A DNA stretch of 64,000 bases, taken from NCBI GenBank assembly GCA_010909165.1, contig VJWM01000119.1:1-64000 (forward strand), in the 5' to 3' direction. The DNA comes from Anthoceros angustus (taxonomy: Eukaryota; Plantae; Anthocerotophyta). Under the pieces are notes generated by a model. That model saw nothing but the letters and a program-made list of their open reading frames with translations. It had not been told where the DNA came from and did not search any database. The position numbers were made by a program, and so were the translations under genes. Positions 35,561 to 50,209 of this stretch are shown here, in pieces. The stretch's first letter is position 1; every line of letters starts with the position of its first letter.

Positions 35561-35573
35561 AGGCGGGTTTGAG

Positions 35574-35654
35574 GCCAGATGGCGGAATTGGTAGACGCGC
35601 TAGACTCAAAATCTTGTTCTCGCAAGGAGTGCAGGTTCGATTCCTGTTCTGGCA
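35574..35654 (+). tRNA. tRNA-Leu (CAA)
   Basis: GCCAGA..TCTGGC acceptor, D-loop GGAATTGGTAGAC, anticodon loop CT-CAA-AA, long variable arm, T-loop GGTTCGATTCC. Confidence 0.95.
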
Positions 35655-35662
35655 CTAAAGTT

Positions 35663-35688
35663 ATAGGTCTTCCAATTGGAAGACCTAT
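35663..35688 (+). terminator. Perfect 26-bp palindrome after tRNA-Leu
   Basis: ATAGGTCTTCCAATTGGAAGACCTAT followed by TT. Confidence 0.75.
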
Positions 35689-35744
35689 TTGCTAATCCAT
35701 GACAAATATGTAAACAATTTCCTGGCGGTTCTGAAATACCTAAA

Positions 35745-35788
35745 GACTGAAAATCCTTGTGTCGGCGGTTCGATCCGCCCCACACCAC
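35745..35788 (+). pseudogene. 3' half of tRNA-Phe(GAA), att-like site
   Basis: GACTGAAAATCCTTGTGTCGGCGGTTCGATCCGCCCCACACCAC: anticodon loop, T-arm and acceptor 3' strand with no D-arm or 5' strand. Confidence 0.85.
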
Positions 35789-35789
35789 G

Positions 35790-35833
35790 AAGAAAATGAA
35801 GCGGTTATAACAAAAGTTATAATCGCTTTTTCT
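35790..35833 (+). terminator. Hairpin after tRNA-Phe fragment
   Basis: AAGCGGTTATAAC-AAAA-GTTATAATCGCTT then T-tract. Confidence 0.65.
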
Positions 35834-35859
35834 TGTGGGTACAACATAGGTACAACATT

Positions 35860-36317
35860 CTTTACGACGAACTCTACGTGCTTATTTATGTAGTCGGTAA
35901 TCAGGAAAGTACTTTCATGTCCCTCAACGTTTTCAAAAACCTGCTTGAAAATTTCCAATCTGAAATCAGGATCAAATGTTGTGTTATCACGTTCAGTACC
36001 GTGGATATACATCTCCCAATCTTCAACGGAAACTTTATCCTGATTGTCAAATAGTAACTTTGCAAGTTCTTGTTCAGCATCGGACGCCTTCAACAAATCT
36101 GTCCATTTCGAAAGCCAACCAATATCGCAATGTAATGTTGCGCTTTCATTAGGCTAAATCGTCCTCGTTAATATCGTAGTCCAATATGAGACTTTCGATA
36201 TCGAAGTATTTTGGATCATACTTGTAATCACCAATAGTTGCTTCCGGAGATTTCTTTTCGTTTGGTAATCCTTGAAAAGATTCTTTGCTTGAGTTTGAAA
36301 AATTCAATTTGGGTCAT
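35860..36317 (-). CDS. Hypothetical ~150 aa protein with KLQAKNLFKD..AQHYIAILVGFRKW-type helical motif
   Basis: Stitched: MTQIEFFKLQAKNLFKDYQTK..YDPKYFDIESLILDYDI..LMKAQHYIAILVGFRKWTDLLKASDAEQELAKLLFDNQ; stop uncertain. Confidence 0.75.
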
Positions 36318-36465
36318 AATATAATCTTTATGTTACCCAGACTTGTTATCTAAAACATTTTGCGTTCGTAATCTTTTGTTAGATAAAAGCCTGGAAAAAG
36401 GTTATATTATCTATTGGCTGATGAAATCTTTGCACGAACGAGCAGGCTTGCCAATAAGCCGTTGA
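36310..36465 (-). ncRNA. Candidate structured cis-regulatory RNA (multi-pseudoknot 5' leader)
   Basis: Four perfect 7-8 bp complementary pairs in interleaved order plus a hairpin over the ATG; promoter-like TACCTTTA at 36475-36468. Confidence 0.6.
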
Positions 36466-36741
36466 CATAAAGGTAACAGATACTTGGAATAGTTGAGCCG
36501 GAGATTTGGCGTGATCGATTAGCTTAGGCCTAGATTTTCACCCAACTTCTTCATGTGCACACGCACAGTATAACATACAGATAATCAGGATAATATGTAA
36601 CTTAACTTATTGCGCGTTTTTGTTTTCAGTTTATATTTACCCAAAGCCTAAAAGTTATTCTTGACACCTTTTCAATTCAGCGTTTCATTGGTAAGAAACG
36701 CAGTATTTTGAATGTTTAATAGTAGGCTAATTAGCAACTAA

Positions 36742-39559
36742 ATGAATTTTACACCTTATCACGCCAAGTACATTGCCAGTGAATTAACCAAGAAGCGCGT
36801 CTGATAGTATTCAGAAGTTAGCCCGCCTTGGTTGACGCTCAAGTTGACCTTAATCCACATCAGGTTGAGGCCGCGCTATTCGCTTTTCAATCTCCTTTGT
36901 CAAAGGGAGCTATTTTGGCCGACGAGGTGGGGCTAGGAAAGACAATTGAAGCCGGATTAGTAATCTCAAAAATGGGCTGAAAGAAAACGGAAAATTTTGA
37001 TTATTACCCAGCTAATTTAAGAAAGCAATGGAGCCAGGAACTGCTGGACAAATTTTTCTTCCCTCTTTCATTTTAGAAGCGAAGCCATTTAACGAGTTGA
37101 TCAAAAGGCCGATTTAATCCTTTTGAACGCAATGACATTGTGATTTGCTCTATCAATTTGCAAGATCAAAGAATCTTACCTGAAGATGATTAATTGGGAT
37201 TTGTTATTGATGAAGCCCACCGTTTAAGAAATGTCTACAAACAATCCAATAAAATCGCAAAAGTCGATAAAAATTCAGTAGAAGAAGCACCTAAGATTCT
37301 TCTTACTGCAACTCCACTTCAAAAATAATCTGTTAGAACTATACGGGCTTGTGAGCATCATCGATGAATACACCTTTGGCGATTTGAAGCTTTAAATCTC
37401 AATATAGCAAGGTGAACGGCACCGCTGACGAAAGCACTTTTGAAGAATTGAAGGAACGACTGAAGCCGATTTGTAAAAGAACGCTTCGCCGTCAGGTTTT
37501 AGAATATATACGTTATACGAATAGGATTGCTTTAGTAGAAGAGTTTTATCCCACTGATGAAGAGCAAAACTTTATGATTTGGTAACAGAATATTTGCAAA
37601 GAGAAACTCTTTCGCTTTACCGGCCAGTCAAAGAAAATTGATGACCTTGATCCTAAGAAGGCTTTTGGCATCATCAACCTATGCAATTTCTGCAACGCTC
37701 GAATCTCTTGCCAATAAACTTGAGTCACTCATTAAGAACCAAGAAGCGAATGAAGCTGATAATGAGATTGCAGAAAATTTCTGAAACATTTGATGAATTG
37801 AAAGACGAATGGTCAGAAGAAGACGATGATGAAATAGCGCCTGTTTTCAGCGAACAAGATATTGCCAATATAAAAGAGGAAATGGCCTCACTCAAGGAGT
37901 TTGAAGCTTTGGCAAAATCCATTCAAGTTAACTCAAAGGGCAGAAATTATTTACCGCATTAGAAAAGGGTTTACTGAACTCGAACGATTGGGAGCACCTC
38001 GCAAGTCAATTATCTTTACGGAGAGCACTCGGACACAAGAGTATTTAAGGGCTTGCTTGAAGAGAACATATATACAGGAAAGGTTGCTTTTCAACGGAGT
38101 AAACAACGATAAAAATCCAAAGAGATTTACAAAGCCTGGGTTGAAAATATAAAGGGACGGACAGAGTAACAGGATCGAGAACTGCCGATATGCGGGCGGC
38201 ATTGGTGGATTATTTCAGAGACGAAGCAACTATTATGATTGTTACCGAAGCTGCTGCCGAAGGCATCAATCTTCAATTCTGTTCTTTGGTTATCAACTAC
38301 GATCTTCCATGGAATCCGCAAACGAATAGAACAACGAATAGGAAGGTCGCATCGTTACGGTCAAAAATTCGATGTTGTCGTAGTAAACTTTTTGAATAAG
38401 GCAAATGCCGCAGATGTAAGAGTTTATCAATTACTTGAACAAAAGTTCAATTTGTTTAACGGCGTTTTCGGAGCCAGTGACGAAGTGTTAGGAAGTATCG
38501 AAAGCGGATGGATTTTGAGAAAAGAATCGCTGCCATTTATCAGAATTGCCGCACACCTGATCAGATTGCCGATGCATTTAATAAACTGCAATCGGAACTC
38601 GAAGTAAGTATTTGATAACCTTAATAAAACACGTCAAAATCTATTGGAAAATTTGACGAGGAGGTACGAGAAGCTCCGTATCAACCTACAAGAAAGTAAA
38701 GAATACTTATCTAAGTATGAAGCTTGGTTGTGGGGTATTACGAAATATTACTTGGGAGAGGTGCTGAGTATGCTGCCGATGAGCATTTTCATTAAAAGAA
38801 ACCCTTTTGAGGGTGAAGTGATTCACCTGGCCCCTATCGGATAGGCAAGAACGTCGATGAATCTAATATATATAGAATAAACCATCCGCTTGCTCAGAAG
38901 ATCATTGAAAATGCAAAGGATTGTCGCTGCCTTCAAGAGAGTTGTCGTTTAACCTTTCCACGTCTCCTATAAAATATCAATCCTGAATTCATTGACAGGG
39001 AAATCAGGGTGGCTCTTAAAAAACTTTCCGTTACCACCTTTGATACGGAAGATCATGTAATACTTTCGGCACTTGTTGACGATGGTACTGAACTTGATAG
39101 CGAACAATGTGTGAGATTGTTTTCGGTAGAGGCAGATGAAGCGGATGTATCTGAGGTGTTTGATACCGCTGATGATAGCCTTGCTCCTATTTATGAGAGG
39201 AGAAAAGCCCAAATAGTTGACGGAATTAATGTGAAGAATGCGGCATACTTTGACGTGGAGATTGAGAAGCTAGATAAATGGGGCGAGGATCGAAGAAGCT
39301 CGCTGAAAATAACGCTGAAAGAATTGGATGAAGAAATTCGGAACCTAAAAAACAGGCCCGGCTTGCTAATCTCCCGAAAATTAAAACTTGAAAAGAACGG
39401 AAAAGTCTCGAAACCAAAAGGGATGAAGCTTGGAAAGAATATGACGGCGCTGCAAAGAAATAGATCAAACGAAGGATAAACTTCTGGATCAGATCGAGGA
39501 AAAGCTTGAACAAAAGATAAGAAGACTCCTTATTTCTTATTCGTTGGAATATAAAGTGA
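36742..39559 (+). CDS. SNF2-family SF2 helicase/translocase
   Basis: VDLNPHQVEAALFAF, ILADEVGLGKTIEAG, VIDEAHRLRN, LLTATPLQ, IIFTESTRTQ, TEAAAEGINLQ, NYDLPWNP, EQRIGRSHRYGQ. Confidence 0.93.
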
Positions 39560-39564
39560 CACTT

Positions 39565-39764
39565 ATGAGCGAAAAAATCCTAATGATGTTCTTGCGATGA
39601 GATTGCCAAGAAGCTAATTGAAGAAGGTTTGATTGACAAATCTTCGGAGAAATCATTCATCAAAGGGCTTAGCGAAGGAAACTACAAAGAGGCTGATTGG
39701 AAGACCCTTTTTGGAAGAAGTTATCAATAAACCAAAACCTGACTCCGATGAAACTAAAAACTAA
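39565..39764 (+). CDS. Small hypothetical protein (~65 aa), missed by ORF track
   Basis: MSEKNPNDVLA-EIAKKLIEEGLIDKSSEKSFIKGLAEGTTKEADWKTLLEEVINKPKPDSDETKN*; starts 5 nt after SNF2 stop and overlaps next ATG. Confidence 0.7.
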
Positions 39765-42048
39765 ACATTGATTCATTCAGAGGGGCAAGCTGCTCATTCT
39801 TGAATTTGACGGTGAAAAACGTCACAATGGTCTTTGGTGAAAAACGGGAACGGGAAATCAACCATTACCGATTCGCTAATTTGCCTTTGTACCGCTAATG
39901 ATCACGGTTCCTTGGATGACAAATCCTCGATAGATAAGTCGTTCTATACGTCAATATCGAGTAAGCCTGCGGATTTGAAGATCGAATTAAAAACGGATGT
40001 GGGGACTTTAAAACTTCCTTATCAGGAAAAGTTTTGCGAAAACCCTGCCGTCGGTCATCCGATTGTAAGGCATTTAAGACGTAGCCAAATCACACAGTTT
40101 ATCGAAGAACAGCCTCATAAGCGTTATGAGCAATTGCAATCCTTTATTAACGTAGGAAACATTGCAAAGAGTGAAGACTCTTTAAGGAAGTTGAATAAAG
40201 AAACAGAGGATGCACAAAAGATAGCGATTAGTACATTAAATAATGCGTCCACAACGCTAGAGCAGACTTGGGCGAATGAAGGAAAGCCGGAAAAGAATTG
40301 GGAAAGTTGGGCAAAAAGAATCTGCAAAAAGATGTTGCAGAAGAAACCAGGCTTAAACATTTAGAGGCGCTATTGCCAAATGGAGTTCTATCAAGGAGAC
40401 GGAGGCGAAACATAAGTCCGATGTTGACGAATTTGAAAAAGCTGCAAAAAGACACGCAGAAGAAAAGATGAAGAAAGCGCAGGAAGGAAATGAAAACGCT
40501 AATGCGGATCTTCTTTCCTTGTTGCAATCTGCACAGAAGTTCATATCGGGAAAGGAAGATGTTAAAAGTTGCCCTGTTTGCGAGAATACGGTCGAAAAAG
40601 GCCAACTTTTAAAGTCGCTTGATTCAAAAATTGGATCAATGAATTCATTTAAGGAAATTGTTCAAGCTTGTAAAACAGCACGAAAAGCTGCCGAGGAAAA
40701 ACAGAAAATTCAGGAATCAACTATTACAACATTTGTTCAGAAAATAACCGTGTTTGAACAGGGCATCACATCAATCACAGATAAACCATTCCCGGACATT
40801 ACAAAAGGTTGGCTTTCATAAAGTCTGGCGATACACCTGAACAAAAATTGGCGCTTTTATTAAGGCCTTTGATGAAATAGATAAGGAAATCGACACTGAA
40901 AGACAGACGGCGGAAAGATAAAAAGGCAATCGGTCAACACAACCTTATCAAAGACCAATACAAGTCCATATTGTCGTCCCGTGAAAATCAGCGGGCACAC
41001 AAACGTTACTGGTTGCCATTGGCAATACATTGAAGATTGTCGAAAAGCACGGAAAGATTTTGTTCAAAGCGAACTTGTTTCTATTTCATCTGATGTAGAT
41101 GCCTTGTATCAAAAGCTTCACCCAAACGAAAGTTTAGGCGGGATTTCTCTCACATTAAAACAAACAACAAAAATTCACTTGAACTCAGCGCTGATTTTAT
41201 ACTAAGTCCGGCATTACCCTCAATCGGTTTACAGTGAATCCCACTTAGATACATTAGGTATATGCGTGTTCATCGCCCTGGCAAAAAATACGGCGCAGCT
41301 AATTCGATACTGATTTTGGATGATGTCGTAATGTCGGTTGATGAAAACCACTTGGACAGATTTATAGGCCTTTTGCATGACGAAGCCGATAACTTCGCTC
41401 ACATTATCATCACCACCCATTACCGCCCTTGGAAAGACCGCTACAGATATAACAGAGCACCGAGTCAGAAGGTCCATTTCGTTGAATTAAGGCCATGGTC
41501 TTTGGGGAATGGTATCAGGGTTCAAAATGGAAAGCTTGCCATCGATGAATTGCGGCAGGCTCTTGCTGACCAAAGCCATTTCGACCGCCAAGCGATAACT
41601 AGTAAATCAGGAATAATACTGGAAAATATTCTGGACTATCTATCGGTATTATTTCAGTGCAGGGTACCTAGAAAAGCCTAAGAATGATTATCAGCTAAGA
41701 GAGCTTTTGGACTGCATATCAAGTAAGCTAATGAACCTATTGAAAGTTGAACATTTGGGCAAAAATGCATTAGGAAATACGACGGGACCGTAATCACAAA
41801 AACAACGGACTTGAAAACATTATTGAATAACATAAAGCAGTTAGCTATAGTCCGAAATTGGGTTGCACACTTCAACTATGACGGTTCGACGGTTAGTGAT
41901 GCCGATGTAGAAAAATTCAATATGACTTTAGAACTATCTGAGCTGATAACATGCCCTGACTCCGGCAATTTTCCTGATAGGAACAAGTCTGGTTCATATT
42001 GGGAGACGAAGAACGGATCGATCAGACTATACCTTACAAGAACCCTGA
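39748..42048 (+). CDS. Rad50/SbcC/RloC-like ABC ATPase with zinc hook and C-terminal HEPN-like domain
   Basis: IDSFRG, Walker A GENGNGKST, coiled coil with CPVC (40570), signature YSESHLD (41230), Walker B ILILDDVVMSVD, H-loop IITTH, RNWVAH (41853). Confidence 0.85.
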
Positions 42049-43966
42049 TGACAAATCAAAACATAAAGATGTCACAGATAGAAAAGCTACCATTGACTTC
42101 AATGGATATCAAAGATTCACAAGTTGAAAAACTGAAAGAACTGTTTCCTGAAGTTTTACGGAAGGAAACAAAATCGACTGGGAGAAATTAAAGCTCACGT
42201 TGGGTGAGAATATTGATCCGGGAAAGAACGTTTCGGCATGAATTGGCCGGGTAAGGCGGATTGTTTTAAAACTATTCATTCAACCAAGTGCCGCAACCCT
42301 GGTTCCTGATAGGGAAGAAAGTGTTGATTTCGATAACACCCAAAATCTTTTTTATTGAAGGCGATAACCTTGAAGTACTAAAGCTTTTGCAGAAAAGCTA
42401 TTTAGGCAAAATCAAGATGATTTATATCGATCCACCATATAACACCGGTAACGATTTTATTTATCCTGATAATTACGCAGAAAGCCTTAGTGCTTATTTA
42501 GAATACACAGGCCAGGTGGATACTGAAGGAAAGAAATTCTCAACGAACACAGAAACAGATGGTCGCTTCCATAGCAAGTGGATGAATATGATGTACCCTG
42601 AGACTGTTTCTTGCTAAAACTTGTTGACTGACGACGGTTGATTTTATTTCTATCGATGATGCTGAAGTTGATAATCTTAAAAATCTGCAATGAAATATTT
42701 GGAGAAGAAAATTTTATTGATCCTATAATCTGGAAGAAACGTTACGGCGGAGGGCAAAGAGAAATTTCTTGTGGCTCTACACGAATATATTCTTGTGTAT
42801 GCAAAGGATAAAATTAAGTTAGATAATTTCTTTATACCTCTCGATGAGGAATCGATCGATTAAGATATTATACTAACAAGGATGATAAATTTGCAAAACG
42901 GGAGGCTATAGAACGCATCCGCTAGAAGGGATGAAAAGCTTTGATGCTCGAGAAAATCTTGTATTTCCAATCAAGGCCCTGATGGAACAGAAGTATGGCC
43001 AAAGCGACAGTGGAGATGGGGCCGTGAAAGGGTTGAAGAGGCTTTAAACGATAACGAGATTGAGTTTACGAAGACAAAAATGGAGAATGGGTTTTATCTT
43101 CTAAACAATATTTGTATGATGAAACAGGTGAGATAAGAGATACAAAGCCTTTTCAATTATAGATGACATTTTCACCCAACATGGCACGAATGAAATTGTT
43201 GACATTTTTGGAAACGCTAAAATTTTCGATTACCCTAAGCCGTCAGAATTGATATTAAAACTTTTACAAATTGGTTTTGGATCAAGTGAGAATGGGATAC
43301 TCTTAGATTTCTTTTCAGGGTCATCAGCATCTGCCCATGTTGATACAGCTGAATACTCTTAAAAAGGAGATAGGAAATTTATTTGTGTCCAAATACCCGA
43401 ACCGGTTGGCGAAGCGATGCTCATAAAGCTGGCTTTAACAATATAGCAGATATAGGAAAAGAAAGGATAAGGAGGATCATCTCACGCTTTAAAGCAAACA
43501 AGTAAAGACAATGGGGCAAGTTCATTATTTCCCGAACATAAAGCTGTAGCCCAAGATTTGGGCTTTAGAGTATTGAAACTTCAAAAGTCTAATTTCAGAA
43601 GTTGGGACGCAGGTGTTTTAAAGGAGGCCACTGCAATTCAAACCGAATTAGACTTACATGCTCATCATGTATCAAGCCAAGCAAAAAATGAAGCCATTTT
43701 ATTTGAAATCTTGATCAAAGCAGGTTTGAGCCTTCTATTCCAATTAAGAGATTTGAAATCGCAGGCAAGGAACTTTTACCGTTGCTGAGGAGAGCTTATA
43801 ATATGCTTGGAAAAGAATCTGACCTATGATTTGATAAAATCTATTGCAGAAATTCAACCTACTCGAGTTATCTGCCTTGACGAAGGTTTCCAAAATAATG
43901 ATCAGCTAAAACAAATGCGGTTCAGATTATGAAGAGTAAAAGATCTTGAGCTTTAGAACCATATAA
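42048..43966 (+). CDS. mod: Type III restriction-modification methyltransferase Mod (N6-adenine, beta class)
   Basis: LKELFPEVF, IEGDNLEVLKLL, IYIDPPYNTG, HSKWMNMMYP, FDYPKP, LDFFSGSSASAH, IGKERIRR, DLGFRVLKL. Confidence 0.93.
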
Positions 43967-43968
43967 CG

Positions 43969-46871
43969 ATGAAGATTAAATTTGATAGTGAACAGTCATT
44001 CCAGAAAGAGGCCGTAGCTTCTATTGTTAATTTGTTTGATGGGCAACCACTAAGCAAAGAAGATTTTAGCAGAGATAAATACTGCTGCCGTAACTGGACA
44101 AACGAGTCTTTTCAATCTGAATTAGGCATAGGAAACAATATCGTCATTAATTCCGATGCTATCCACAACAGCCTGAATGAGGTCCTGAGTGAGAATGATC
44201 TTGACGCAATAGATAAAATTCTTTTCAAGGAAACGGAATGAACTTTTCCGTTGAAATGGAAACAGGAACAGGCAAGACCTATGTTTATCTACGAACTATC
44301 TTTGAGTTGCATGAGAAGTATGGGTTCAAAAATTTATTGTTGTCGTTCCGAGCGTTGCAATCCGCGAAGGAGCTTTAAAAATTTAGATATTACTAGGAAC
44401 ATTTTCGAGCCTTATACAACAATGTTGAGTTTGAGCACTTTGTTTACGACAGCAAAAGGCGAACAGACTAAGACAATTTGCCACTAGTAACCAGTTGCAA
44501 ATAATGGTGATCAACATTGATGCCTTTCGAAAAGACTTTTCAGAAAGCGAAGAGGAAAAGAAAAGTAATGTAATCTTCAAAGAGAGCGATAAATTATCCG
44601 GAAGAAAGCCTATCAATTTGTGCAGGCAACAAATCCTTTGTTATTATCGACGAGCCTCAAAGTGTTGATACAACGCCTCAGGCACAGGAAGCCATCAAAT
44701 CACTTAATCCTGCCTGCATTTTCCGTTTTCTGCAACACATAAAATCTCTATAACCTAGTTTATAAACTTGATCCTGTTAAAGCGTACAAGCTTGGATTGG
44801 TTAAGCAGATCGTTGTTGCTTCCGTTACAGGAGCAAATGCGCAAAATGACGCTTACGTTAAACTACTTGAAGTGGATAATAAGAAAGGAATCCGTGCAAG
44901 GGTACGGATTCAGGTGCAGGGAAATCAAAAATTGCCGAGAAGGACTTTTGGGTCACTCAGAACAGTGACTTATTCGCAATATCGAACGAACGGGAGGCTT
45001 ATAGAAATGGATTTGAAGTATTGGATATTAATGCCGAACCTGGAAACGAGTTTATAGATTTTACGGTCGGTAGATTATATAAAGGTCAAGAGCGAGGCGG
45101 CATCAAGGAAGATTTGAGCAAGGTTCAAATCCGAAACACAATCAAAAGCATTTCGATAAAGAGCTTCAAGTGAAGGATAAGGGTATAAAGGTCCTAAGCC
45201 TTTTCTTTATCGATAGAGTTGCAAATTATCGGACTTATTCGGAAGATGGAAAAGCCTTACACGGTAAGTTTGCTCAGATTTTGAAGAATGCTATGCGGAA
45301 CTAATAAAACTGCCGCAATACCAATCCTTAAATCAATACCTCTGGATAAAGTGCATGACGGGTATTTTTCCCAAGATAAAAGGGATTTTGAAAGATACGT
45401 CCGGCGCTACCCAGGCTGATGATGACACCTATGCTAAGATCATGCGGAATAAAGAACAGTTGCTATCAATAGATGAACCGCTCAAATTTATATTTTCTCA
45501 CTCCGCCTTGAGGGAAGGGTGGGATAATCCCAATGTCTTTCAAATCTGTACTCTTAACGAAACCCGATCTACAACAAAGAAACGACAGGAAATAGGAAGA
45601 GGTTTACGATTACCAGTTAATCAGAATGGTGAACGGGTATTTGATGATAACATCAATAAACTTACAATCATTGCAAACGAAAGTTATGATGAATTTGCCT
45701 CAAATTACAGACCGAGTACGAAGAAGATTGCGGCGTCACATTTGGAAAAGTACCAAAGGTTGCTTTCAAGGAATAAGTCTATGGTCGGAAGACAAGGAAA
45801 TACCTTTTATAAAAAGAACAATCAACGGACATTTGGAACGTTTTGGCTTCAAACGGGTTTATAGATAAAAGCGGTAAAATCTTGCCGATGTTTAGGCCAT
45901 CAGAAGATGGCTTTACATTGAAACTTCCTGAACAATTCAGTTCAGTTGAATCGAGAGATCATTTCGATTTTACAAAGTTACCAGTTAGATCGCCACATTA
46001 AGAAAGATGAAGAACCCAAACGCCTGAAGATAAACAAACAAGTATTTCTTGACCCGGAATTCGAGACACTATGGAACAAGATCAAACACAGGACTACTTA
46101 CCAAGTCGAATATGACACTCCAAAACTGATTCAAAATTGTATTGCAGCAATAAGAAAGATGGAGCCGATTGACCCTGTCGTTGTTAGTTATAGAGAAGCT
46201 GAGGTAGATGTCAAGTAAAAGGGTTATTACAAAGGAAGTCAATCCAATATTCATAAGGTGTCTTTCACAGGCGGCTTACCTGACATCATTGCTTATGTTC
46301 AAAAGCAAACTGAGCTCACAAGAAAAACGATTGTAGAAATTATAAAAGGAAGCAATCGGGTTTCTGACTTTCTGGTCAATCCACAACGATTCATGGATGA
46401 AGTTTCCGCATTAATCAATCGTGAGTTGTATAGATTGATGATTGATGGAATTAAGTATGAAAACTTACCGCCGGTTTGACCGAATGGAGTATGCAGTTAT
46501 TCCGAGATGATGAATTAAAAGATTATTTTGAGGAATGTCTTGAAGTCCAAAAGTCAATCTTTGATAAAATTATTTACGACAGTGAAATAGAAAGAAAAGT
46601 TTGCAGAGGATTTAGACAAGCGAACCGACATCAAGCTCTTTCTTAAACTTCCGTCTTGGTTTAAGGTGGAAACGCCTGTAGGAGAATATAATCCTGACTG
46701 GGCTATAGTTAAGCACGAAGACGCAACAATTTACTTAGTAAGAGAAACAAAAGGGACAAAAGATTTTGAGAAACTAAGAAATTCTGAGGCCGATAAGGTT
46801 CGATGTGGTCGAAAACATTTGAAGCTCTTGACGTAAACTTTAATGTCGTCGTTAGAGCTTCAGAAATATAA
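43969..46871 (+). CDS. res: Type III restriction endonuclease Res
   Basis: [54 protein letters not shown], nuclease [14 protein letters not shown]. Confidence 0.93.
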
Positions 46872-46882
46872 ATGTTGTTACC

Positions 46883-47437
46883 ATGGAACTATCTGAACTG
46901 GTCGAACGACTGAGAACGGTATTCAGTAAATTCGTATAGCCGCGAAAAGTTATTGCGGCAGGATGCACATGAGGATGCGATCACCACGGAACTGATATTG
47001 TTTTAAGGAATACTTCTCTGATTGGCCTCATGAGATAAACCACAATTACGATAAACGAATTGTGAACAATGAACTCATGAAAAGCAAACGCGTTTCATGT
47101 TGGCAAATTTACCGGCTAGTAAGATACCTAAAATACCAACCTGCATGATGAGTACGTATTAAAAGGTTTACTGCCTGATATTATATTTCATGATTTGGAT
47201 GGACCTAACACAACTTTTTAATGTTCGAAGTCAAGAAAAGTACAAATAAGAACGGTGACGACAGGATCATGTATTCGTTTAAACTCCGCAGCCACCGCTG
47301 CCGACTTGAAATATGAATACGGCGTCTTTGTAGATTTCACCTCAGGAAATAAATTCGACATCACTGCACCAGCTTTTTCGAAGTATATCAAAACGGCGAC
47401 ATTGTGTACGAAGAAGAAATCAAGTAAACCAAAATAA
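46883..47437 (+). CDS. Hypothetical PD-(D/E)XK-fold protein
   Basis: Stitched MELSELVERL..AHEDAITTEL..HNYDKR..LLPDIIFHD..FLMFEVKKS..KYEYGVFVDF. Confidence 0.6.
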
Positions 47438-47720: not shown

Positions 47721-48463
47721 TTATGCGTTCGGTTCGTTTTCTCCTTTTCTTCTTTTGCGTAGCGATTCTCCTTTTAGTTCCAGGCGGTGTGCATGATGAA
47801 CGATTCTATCCAGTATCGCATCAGCGATAGTTTGCTCGCCTATAATATCATACCATTTACTTACTGGTACTTGTGAGGTAATGATCAGGGCGCTTTTTCC
47901 ATGACGATCTTCCACCAGTTCCATCAGTGCTGTGCGGCTTTGTGCGTCCAGGGGTTGCAGGCCGAAGTCATCCAATATAAGCAGGTGTTGTCTTTCAATA
48001 CGCGCTATTTCCTTAATGTAAGAGCCGTCTGCTTTACTCATTTTAAGTTTGGAGAACAGCTTAGGAACATTGTGGTAGACCACCCTGTATCCCCGGCTAG
48101 GCGTGATGTCCCAGTGCGGAGGCAATATAACTTTGCCGATACCTGTACTTCCTGTAACGAGGACACATTCAGCTTTATCAATGAAGCTACAGTCTGCCAG
48201 CCGCATGATCTGGTTACGGTCGATGTTACGATCGCTATTATAGTAAAGTCCCTCAAGGTCTGCCTTGTAGCGGAAGCGGGCATTCTTTACCTTTGATCTA
48301 CACTACGGTTTTGCCGGTCGTCCCATTCAGCATCTACCAGGTGAGCGATCAACTCATCCGGTGTATAAGTTTCCTGCTTCTCTGATTCCAGGCTGGTTTT
48401 AAATACACGGTACATGCCTTGTAGTTTCATTTTGCGCATCTTGTCTAATGTTGCTGCATTCAT
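47721..48463 (-). CDS. istB: IS21 helper ATPase IstB
   Basis: TGSTGIGK Walker A, LLILDDFGL, ELVEDRH, IITSQVP, ADAILDRIVH. Confidence 0.95.
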
Positions 48464-48500
48464 AATGTGTGATTGTTATTGTAAGTGATGAATAAAATGA

Positions 48501-50041
48501 TTATTGATAGTAGCCTTCTCCTCTGATATTGTCGTGGAATGGCATTTTCAACTGGTCAGTTTCGTCCGGCGTGAGGCCGAGATCCAGTTCTCTCCAATAT
48601 TTTCTGTATGGTTTTGTAGTTGTAAGCACCGTATCCCAAGGCCCGCTGACAGGCTTTTATCAGGCGTTCAGTTCCTACTTTCTTAGCAAACCCCAAAATA
48701 CCCATACACGATTTATAAGCCTGCTCAGGGTGTTGTTTACGATCCAGTACTTTCAGGATATAGCATTTTACATCTTCATGGATGCTCTCTGCCCAGGAAG
48801 TGAAGCGCTCAGGCGTCCATTCGCTTACAAAGCGGTGGGTAGAGGCCAGGTGTTCTTTTTCGGTGGTATATTGATAAGGGCTTTTAAGTCTACGATGAAC
48901 AGCAATGCGTTCATAGTTATAGTAAACTTCTACTGTGTGACGGGAGTAAAGCAGTTTTACCTTCTTGCCAATATAACGGTAAGGCACACTGTAATAATGC
49001 TTGTCAGCTCCCAGGCCGACATGTCCATTTTAGCTACAGTAGCAAAGCATTGTTTTTGAGCTCGTAACGCAATACGGGTAGCGGCATGAGGGCGGCCTTC
49101 TCTACTTCATCAAACTGTTGCTGACGGCTATAGTTGCGCCCTCTTAGCATGGCGAGATTATGTTCCTGTAGCGCTTGCCGGATGGCTTGGTTCAGGTCTG
49201 TAAGGTTGTGGTATGGGGTGCGCCGGACTTTTACATAGATGCGGGAGTATATAATACGAACTGCGTTTTCAACGAGCGCCTTATCGCGGGGCGATACGCC
49301 CGGGCCGGAAGAATAGCTGTACCATAATGTTCTGCAAAATCAGCAAAAGTCTCGTTCAGGGTGGGTTCAAACTTACTGCTACGAATAACCGCACTTTTAA
49401 ATTGTCGGGAACAATGGCTGCGGAACACCACCGTAGAAATGCAATGCATTCTCGCAGGCGGCTATAAAATCTTCTTTCTGCTGTGTCATTACCGCTTCCA
49501 CATAGGTAAGCTGACTGGCTCCCAGTATACAAACAAATACTTCTACAGCAGTAACTTCTCCACTCAGCGGATCAACAATACTTAATTTGTCTCCCGCAAA
49601 ATCAACGTAAAGCTTATCACCAGCCTTGTGTTCCATGCGCATCACAGGATTAACCTGGGCTTTCCACTGGGCATAGTAGTGCTTAAACTGGCTTACACCA
49701 AAACCATCAGGATGTTCGACCCTGTATTGCTCCCAAAGCAAATAACGGGTAACACCTTTTTCTTCAGCTCTTTATCAATGGAAGGAAAGCGTTCAAACAA
49801 GATTTGAAGCTTTTCATTTAAAGGTTTAGGTTCAGGCTTTACAAAAGATCTTCCAAATCCTTATCACTGAGTTCACTGATCTCTTCAAAACTCAATCCAC
49901 TGGCAGAAAATGATTTGATATACTTCTTAAGCGTATTACGGGCTACACCTGTTTGCGCTGCGATCTTCAACTTACTGTATCCTGCGTATGCATACGCAGG
50001 ATCTGTCTGATTTTAATCATCGTTATCGGGGTATTGGCCAT
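48501..50041 (-). CDS. istA: IS21 transposase IstA
   Basis: MRMEHKAGDKLYVDFAG, LGASQLTYVEA, FYGGVP, HYGTAILPARAYRP, terminal HDNIRGEGYYQ*. Confidence 0.95.
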
Positions 50042-50112: not shown

Positions 50113-50209
50113 GTGGTCAATTTACGCCGGCGAAGGGTGGTCAATTTAATCCGGCATCGCATGGTCAGCTTAATCCGGCGCTAGGTGGTCAATTTAACCG
50201 GCGTTTGCA
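50113..50209. repeat. Four 24-bp-period IstA-binding subterminal repeats
   Basis: GTGGTCAATTTAnnCCGGC-like units at 50113, 50137, 50161, 50185. Confidence 0.85.

Follow-up and report, generated by a model that had tools for sequence, protein, structure and literature searches.

The 64,000-nucleotide window analysed here (contig VJWM01000119.1 of the Anthoceros angustus assembly GCA_010909165.1) carries an island of six genes between positions 36742 and 47437. The best explanation of the island is probably a core composed of an SNF2 helicase gene and the two genes of a type III restriction-modification (R-M) system, Mod and Res, that hosts a separable two-gene cassette between SNF2 and Mod. 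The cassette consists of a small gene and a gene encoding a zinc-hook ATPase with a C-terminal HEPN domain (ATPase-HEPN), to which a second-line abortive role can tentatively be assigned. The layout is real, widespread, made of known kinds of parts and apparently unnamed. The six genes are:

36742..39559, + strand, SNF2 gene (ATG at 36742, stop codon at 39557-39559)
39565..39762, + strand, small gene (ATG 5 nucleotides past the SNF2 gene, stop codon at 39760-39762)
39748..42047, + strand, ATPase gene (ATG at 39748, inside the small gene; stop codon within the TGATG at 42045-42049)
42047..43966 (end approximate), + strand, Mod gene (start codon joined to the ATPase stop codon in the same TGATG)
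43969..46871, + strand, Res gene (ATG 2 nucleotides past the Mod stop codon, stop codon at 46869-46871)
46883..47437, + strand, gene 6 (ATG 11 nucleotides past the Res stop codon)

An earlier, sequence-only reading of this DNA had described six co-directional genes with these tight junctions, and each junction was located in the sequence. The same reading had let the case for a new system depend on whether homologues of the ATPase are linked to SNF2, Mod and Res elsewhere, and this linkage was found. A genome scan with a piece of the ATPase identified nine Bacteroidota loci, and in a locus of Puia sp. (L001) the genes follow the order of the window (SNF2, small gene, ATPase, Mod, Res). A further 80 metagenome loci were fetched with a profile of the ATPase family and their neighbouring genes were labelled with profiles built from the first loci. 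Within the 75 loci of the close family, the small gene lies beside the ATPase in 55 out of 63 loci with enough upstream sequence and SNF2 lies upstream in 30 out of 35 loci with at least 3.5 kb of upstream sequence. Mod follows downstream in 19 out of 26 loci with at least 4.5 kb, and Res in 16 out of 22 loci with at least 6 kb, of downstream sequence. Anchored on SNF2 instead, a small sample of seven loci chosen among proteins at least 70% identical to the Puia SNF2 showed Mod and Res downstream in all seven and the cassette in three.

The sequence-only reading had treated all six genes as a single unit, and this part of it has to be given up. Gene 6 occurs in no relative, the core occurs without the cassette, and the cassette occurs without the core. 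Each of the four SNF2-anchored loci that lack the cassette retains SNF2-Mod-Res, and the slots around Mod are filled with other genes in three of them: YhcG/DUF1016 and Fic in L097 (13116-14156 and 16188-16943), SLFN_AlbA_2 in L099 (14835-16751) and DUF4917 in L100 (14971-16002); in L101 the slots are empty. The slots of other loci contain GmrSD (between Mod and Res), DUF3800, or an HSP70-like gene together with UvrD (found among positions 12732-14594 of L005, 5400-9668 and 14353-16230 of L010, and 10356-11186 of L012). The small gene and ATPase-HEPN pair is the commonest gene set embedded in the SNF2-Mod-Res slots, and the slot genes of these related loci are all candidates for a function in defence by virtue of their embedding. 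Conversely, the cassette is found within a type I operon in L004 (HsdM, small gene, ATPase, HsdS, HsdR) and without SNF2 or type III genes in four further loci (L003, L006, L044, and L055).

An obligate machine of five or six genes, in which SNF2, the small protein, ATPase-HEPN, Mod and Res work only together, is therefore unlikely, although it is not without attraction: the tight order SNF2-small-ATPase-Mod-Res recurs in L001, L008, L096, L098 and many metagenome loci, the ATPase-anchored count places SNF2 upstream in the great majority of loci, and L002 retains SNF2-small-ATPase despite having no Mod or Res. Set against this are the cassette-free cores (four of the seven SNF2-anchored loci), the cassettes that stand alone or inside a type I operon, the occupation of the same slots by GmrSD, Fic, YhcG, DUF3800 and HSP70-like plus UvrD genes, and the lack of any conservation of gene 6. 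Furthermore, the SNF2 and Res identities move together (70-72% with 67-74%), whereas the ATPase diverges much faster and reaches 41-47% in the same loci. The arrangement is better accounted for by a core with an exchangeable cassette.

None of the six genes is intact in the assembled sequence. The longest open reading frame in the six-gene stretch encodes 182 amino acids and every gene is interrupted; relative to intact homologues, the number of frame switches needed is at least 20 for SNF2, 4 for the ATPase, 9 for Mod and 12 for Res. The interruptions extend over the whole window, in which the longest open reading frame encodes 582 amino acids and just one exceeds 332, so that frameshifts are to be expected in any gene-level description of this genome. 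Between the breaks, the in-frame blocks remain 75% (SNF2), 74% (ATPase), 62% (Mod) and 81% (Res) identical to the Puia locus, with long runs of identical residues. Contigs from a public run of the same sample (X1, which contains 75% of the sampled words) differ from the window between positions 39700 and 43700 by indels at 21 places and by few substitutions. Several of the listed indels fall in runs of A or T and at frame breaks, and one of them (GGG) brings back the glycine of the RNWVGAH motif found in relatives. As the whole window is broken and the X1 contigs differ at 21 indel places within 4 kb, the breaks are most likely for the main part indel errors of a noisy long-read consensus, and the genes are thus probably intact in the organism.

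A dead island, with genuine frameshifts in pseudogenes that decay after transfer, is by comparison very unlikely. Each gene is interrupted, as such decay would predict, and 11 stop codons lie within ungapped aligned blocks (an ambiguous count, as they might sit at block ends). Application of the 12 listed X1 indels, out of 21 places, lengthened the open frames in part and did not restore them fully. The X1 contigs themselves are shallow, at a depth of about 4, and are likely to stem from the same data. These points leave room for some genuine gene decay alongside the noise. Against a dead island, the 64-kb window including its flanks is equally broken, a state that is incompatible with a living genome; blocks of 62-81% identity with stretches of identical residues persist; and the X1 contigs gain or lose bases at the frame breaks, often in homopolymers.

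The domain calls of the sequence-only reading hold for SNF2, the zinc-hook ATPase-HEPN, Mod and Res on the evidence of family matches, motifs and structure models, while the PD-(D/E)XK assignment of gene 6 stays a guess at the level of a motif. The SNF2 gene carries the motifs GLGKT (36930) and DEAH (37209), and its pieces match the PADLOC DrmD profile PDLC02619 and the NCBIfam profile DISARM_DrmD_b along the profile. The Puia SNF2 contains SNF2-rel_dom and Helicase_C domains and scores 699 bits against PDLC02619; these two DrmD profiles are the ones nearest to it. A search of an atlas with the C-terminal 340 residues returned no more than helicase fragments without a name and a faint hint of RapA_C. 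Among the island genes, SNF2 is conserved best; proteins at least 70% identical (70-80%) fall, when clustered at 90% identity, into more than 120 clusters, among them one from a Deltaproteobacteria metagenome-assembled genome. As an observation aside, this conservation (SNF2 at 5278-8247 of L001 and its relatives) is unusually high for a defence gene.

Mod and Res display the features by which type III R-M subunits are recognized, a DPPY methyltransferase and an adjoining protein that joins a superfamily 2 helicase to a PD-(D/E)XK nuclease. The Mod gene encodes DPPY at 42429 and its pieces match N6_N4_Mtase; the Puia Mod scores 654 bits against the PADLOC profile MTase_III. In Res, GTGKT (44265), DEPQ (44649) and PD…ExK (46690 and 46741) were identified, and the piece at 46591-46833 matches RE_endonuc (PF19778) with 103.5 bits. 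The Puia Res scores 1002 bits against REase_III of PADLOC and is made up of a ResIII helicase and a C-terminal RE_endonuc domain. The sixth gene encodes a PD…ExK-like motif only (PDIIFH…FEVKK), its tested pieces found nothing in Pfam, PADLOC or NCBIfam, and no homologue follows Res in any of the related loci fetched. Gene 6 is therefore variable local cargo outside the conserved system.

The small gene of the cassette encodes a protein of about 66 residues that is 79% identical to its Puia counterpart over the aligned block and shares the conserved pattern P.E.LA..I…G….(E/D)W; it belongs to no family in Pfam, PADLOC or NCBIfam. For the ATPase, the motifs NGNGKST (39843), CPVC (40570), SESHLDTLG (41233), a Walker B motif (41307) and RNWVAH (41853) are present in the window, but its pieces alone gave weak family matches only and its identity was therefore worked out through intact relatives. 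A representative search identified 467 members of the family below 1e-30, mostly of 770-790 residues. In the family alignment, numbered along a protein of about 780 residues, G39 and K40 of the Walker A motif and the hook C283-P-x-C286 are invariant, as are S507, H510 and D512 of the signature, D537, and H569; the Walker B motif and the H-loop are invariant as well. At the C-terminus, E637 and R714-N-x-x-G718-x-H720 are invariant (E…R-x5-H), and the spacing from R714 to H720, with N715, corresponds to the Rx4-6H motif of HEPN domains. In public records these proteins bear the names hypothetical protein, AAA family ATPase or Rad50/SbcC-type protein, and one Joint Genome Institute record is named "wobble nucleotide-excising tRNase".

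The full-length model of the ATPase (pLDDT confidence score of 90.5) shows a split ATP-binding cassette (ABC) head from which an antiparallel coiled coil rises, with the CPxC loop at the tip of the coiled coil. A Foldseek search with this model matched Rad50 (5e-14), SMC and the Lamassu protein LmuB (9hqu/9hqx). LmuB was also the best PADLOC profile for six further members or relatives (60-105 bits, covering nearly the whole 611-position model), while it was not among the PADLOC matches of the Puia ATPase. The C-terminal 197 residues were modelled with a pLDDT of 90. Foldseek gave nothing significant for this domain, and the top rows of an exhaustive VIA-align search with it were almost all HEPN proteins (2hsb, Z 8.9; 1ylm, 7.7; Csm6, 7.6; HepT, 7.0), with YutE and the HEPN domains of AbiA and sacsin also among them. 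Based on the invariant residues, the modelled hook and the HEPN fold matches, the designation zinc-hook ATPase-HEPN holds. That the protein is instead a relative of SMC/Rad50-type DNA-repair or chromosome-handling proteins that lies by chance beside R-M genes, with a C-terminal domain that binds nucleic acid and cuts no RNA, is scarcely credible: its first 600 residues match Rad50, SMC and RecN best in sequence and in fold and certain HEPN domains are non-catalytic (PMC3710099), but R714, N715 and H720 together with E637 fit the catalytic HEPN pattern, the gene lies inside R-M operons of type III and type I as well as in integrase-bearing islands, and no Mre11/SbcD-like partner is present.

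A distant clade of the ATPase (L064, L066, L067, L069, L071-L073, and L077; alignment A3) with 22-25% sequence identity has the same architecture: it shares the hook, the motifs SExHLDTLG and RNxxGAH, and a CxxC…C ribbon at the C-terminus. Its members occur without the small gene and without SNF2, two of them (L064 and L077) are located near type I hsd genes, and some score above the cutoff of Pfam AAA_13.

Besides the small size of the SNF2-anchored sample, several observations weigh against the reading of a core with an abortive cassette. In the ATPase, SESHLDTLG stands where an LSGGQ signature would be usual. A CPxCG…CxCG zinc ribbon closes most family members (alignments A1 and A2, last 40 columns), and the cysteines of this ribbon are gone in the window (approximately 41950-42040), in L001 and in some other members, such as P0007, P0016, and P0063, where the neighbouring residues are kept. 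The Puia SNF2 scores 708 bits against DISARM_DrmD_b (NF038318), below the cutoff of 950, and its alignment covers only positions 21-673 of the 868 in that profile. The assignment of the genes to one operon is taken from their spacing, and the roles proposed for SNF2 beside the R-M enzyme and for the small protein are pure conjecture.

The cassette ATPase was compared with three kinds of defence ATPase. RloC joins a zinc-hook ABC ATPase and an anticodon nuclease in one protein (Davidov & Kaufmann 2008, PMC2610378), and the cassette ATPase resembles it in its size range, in its ABC head, whose motifs are separated by a coiled coil bearing a CX2C hook, and in its C-terminal HEPN-type RNase. The published catalytic triad of the RloC anticodon nuclease is Arg-X3-Glu-X36-52-His (PMC2610378); in the cassette family no conserved R-x3-E was seen 36-52 residues before the histidine, a comparison in which no bona fide RloC was aligned, and another alignment might still bring the two patterns together. 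The two families differ further in that the cassette family has a conserved small upstream gene and, mostly, a C-terminal zinc ribbon. Linkage to R-M genes is the rule in the cassette family but a minority trait of RloC, 8 out of 72 RloC genes being located in type I or type III R-M loci (PMC2610378). The matches to Pfam AAA_13 (PF13166) are weak: 28 out of 44 ATPase family members match at E < 0.01 with a best value of 4.8e-10, the Puia ATPase has no match at 1e-3, and three far relatives (L069, L086, and L073) score above the cutoff of 36 bits. AAA_13 is the family that we take to hold RloC. Membership of the cassette ATPase in RloC proper is doubtful.

Within EcoprrI, PrrC responds to the loss of the host R-M enzyme (PMC2610378, PMC3710099). 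The likeness lies in an ABC-ATPase-HEPN gene, thought to be a guard, inside an R-M operon (type Ic in the case of EcoprrI), for which the hsdM/hsdS/hsdR setting of the cassette in L004 offers a parallel. PrrC is, however, half the size and without coiled coil or zinc hook, the host system in the island is type III with an SNF2 helicase, and PADLOC matches to PrrC were weak and confined to far relatives. In both profile and fold, the closest defence match of the ATPase head and coiled coil is LmuB, the SMC/Rad50-like sensor of Lamassu, a system reported to respond to DNA ends. In Lamassu the effector LmuA and LmuC are separate proteins, whereas the effector of the cassette is the fused HEPN domain and its 66-residue partner has no match to LmuC; PADLOC found neither LmuA nor LmuC on any neighbour of the ATPase.

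The core has its nearest counterparts in class 1 DISARM and canonical type III R-M. Class 1 DISARM has DrmD beside DrmMI (10.1101/2021.12.28.474362), and the island shares with it an SNF2 gene directly upstream of an adenine methyltransferase gene. It differs in that its nuclease-helicase is a standard type III Res, and the DISARM genes drmA, drmB (DUF1998) and drmC (PLD) are absent from the window and from L001, where DrmD-type matches only were found. With canonical type III R-M the island shares mod followed by res, N6_N4_Mtase, and ResIII with RE_endonuc, but SNF2 precedes mod in the SNF2-anchored loci and the gaps hold varying defence-type genes. The sequence-only reading had stated that the set lacks the hallmark genes of DISARM, BREX and Dnd; none of these is present. 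Its expectation that no named multi-gene system fits the whole set was likewise borne out by the Pfam, PADLOC and NCBIfam matches of L001 and its relatives.

Other identities considered for the set were rejected. Hma was set aside with 170 bits for HmaA against 699 bits for DrmD, no HmaB, HmaC or DUF499 ATPase, and a methylase of the MTase_III type. MADS produced only weak mad3 and mad8 matches in PADLOC, and DISARM, Lamassu and PARIS/Septu-type ATPases were ruled out as the identity of the set on their PADLOC scores. The open-access literature yielded no name for SNF2 with type III Mod/Res or for the cassette; an earlier description elsewhere is possible.

Conserved catalytic motifs in all four enzymes accompany the tight, co-oriented packing of the genes. 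Within the preferred reading of a core hosting a cassette, Mod would mark the host DNA and the Mod-Res enzyme would cut unmarked DNA. SNF2 could act as a third, translocating component beside the R-M enzyme, for which DrmD beside DrmMI in class 1 DISARM is the nearest parallel. ATPase-HEPN may form a second-line abortive module that cuts tRNA or other RNA and thereby shuts down translation. The small protein, whose gene is translationally coupled to that of the ATPase, might serve as the stoichiometric partner or the brake of the ATPase. Two triggers can be envisaged: DNA ends, which are the cue for RloC and Lamassu, or a failure of the R-M enzyme of the kind that activates PrrC. RloC is switched on by double-strand breaks according to PMC12707154, which cites Klaiman 2014, and the ATPase head is similar to that of DNA-bound Lamassu LmuB. 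That the cassette is embedded in operons of both type III and type I speaks for a functional link with restriction and does not separate the two candidate triggers. By analogy, the guard model would fit the PrrC/RloC paradigm, and it is not new in kind since the idea of an ABC-ATPase-HEPN protein guarding a neighbouring R-M system is established (PMC2610378, PMC3710099).

A more far-reaching proposal combines both parts: SNF2-Mod-Res would be an unnamed class of ATP-dependent restriction with an obligatory SNF2 subunit and a preferred host of abortive-infection genes, and the cassette a new relative, with two components, of RloC and Lamassu that reads R-M-made DNA ends or the failure of the host R-M system. 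This combination is possible, though we consider it somewhat less probable than even.

Two genes are regarded as making up a type III R-M system. In this lineage (seven loci), SNF2 constantly precedes mod and res, and one may ask what a third motor contributes; loading, the clearing of bound proteins, or control of methylation versus cleavage are possibilities. The cassette is a compact counterpart, in fused form, of Lamassu and RloC in which it could be asked how a Rad50-like sensor turns on an RNase and what the 66-residue partner adds. In a study of embedded genes with Hma, BREX, DISARM and type I R-M as hosts, accessory genes were found nested in and co-oriented with the host operons, ABC ATPases and GmrSD were among the commonest embedded families, and type III R-M was not used as a host system (Payne et al., 10.1101/2024.01.29.577857). 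The loci described here indicate that type III systems host embedded defence genes as well, which extends guilt by embedding beyond the hosts used so far.

The six genes form a horizontally and recently acquired anti-phage defence island of low guanine-cytosine (GC) content (38-40%, against 52-56% in the flanks). Two further features mark its surroundings:

35573..35655, + strand, tRNA-Leu(CAA) (ARAGORN; Rfam 45.7 bits)
47721..50000 (upper limit approximate), - strand, IS21-family element (IstB, then IstA), right bound of the island

An AT-rich, tRNA-linked island had been proposed from the sequence. The low GC content stands, and the tRNA-Leu gene is found 1.1 kb upstream of the island genes; linkage in any sense beyond proximity does not, as no integrase was found at the island boundaries and no att-like repeat copy of the tRNA 3' end was found downstream. 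The 1.1-kb stretch between the tRNA and SNF2 (35656-36741) is AT-rich and contains no convincing open reading frame and no Rfam family. A megablast search with the island found nothing similar among E. coli genomes and plasmids. Downstream of the system in two other loci with unrelated hosts (L002, 14111-16363; L097, 20033-22171), a RelA/SpoT gene follows directly, which might reflect a shared insertion site or chance.

The IS21 element, directly to the right of gene 6, is like that gene a local addition. It was recognized by a match to IstB_IS21 (148.8 bits at 47721-48206, with an extra piece at 48287-48463) and by a Mu-transposase C-terminal domain at 48556-48987. Three repeats spaced by 24 nucleotides (TGGTCAATTTAA…) lie at 50114-50197 and may represent its terminal repeats.

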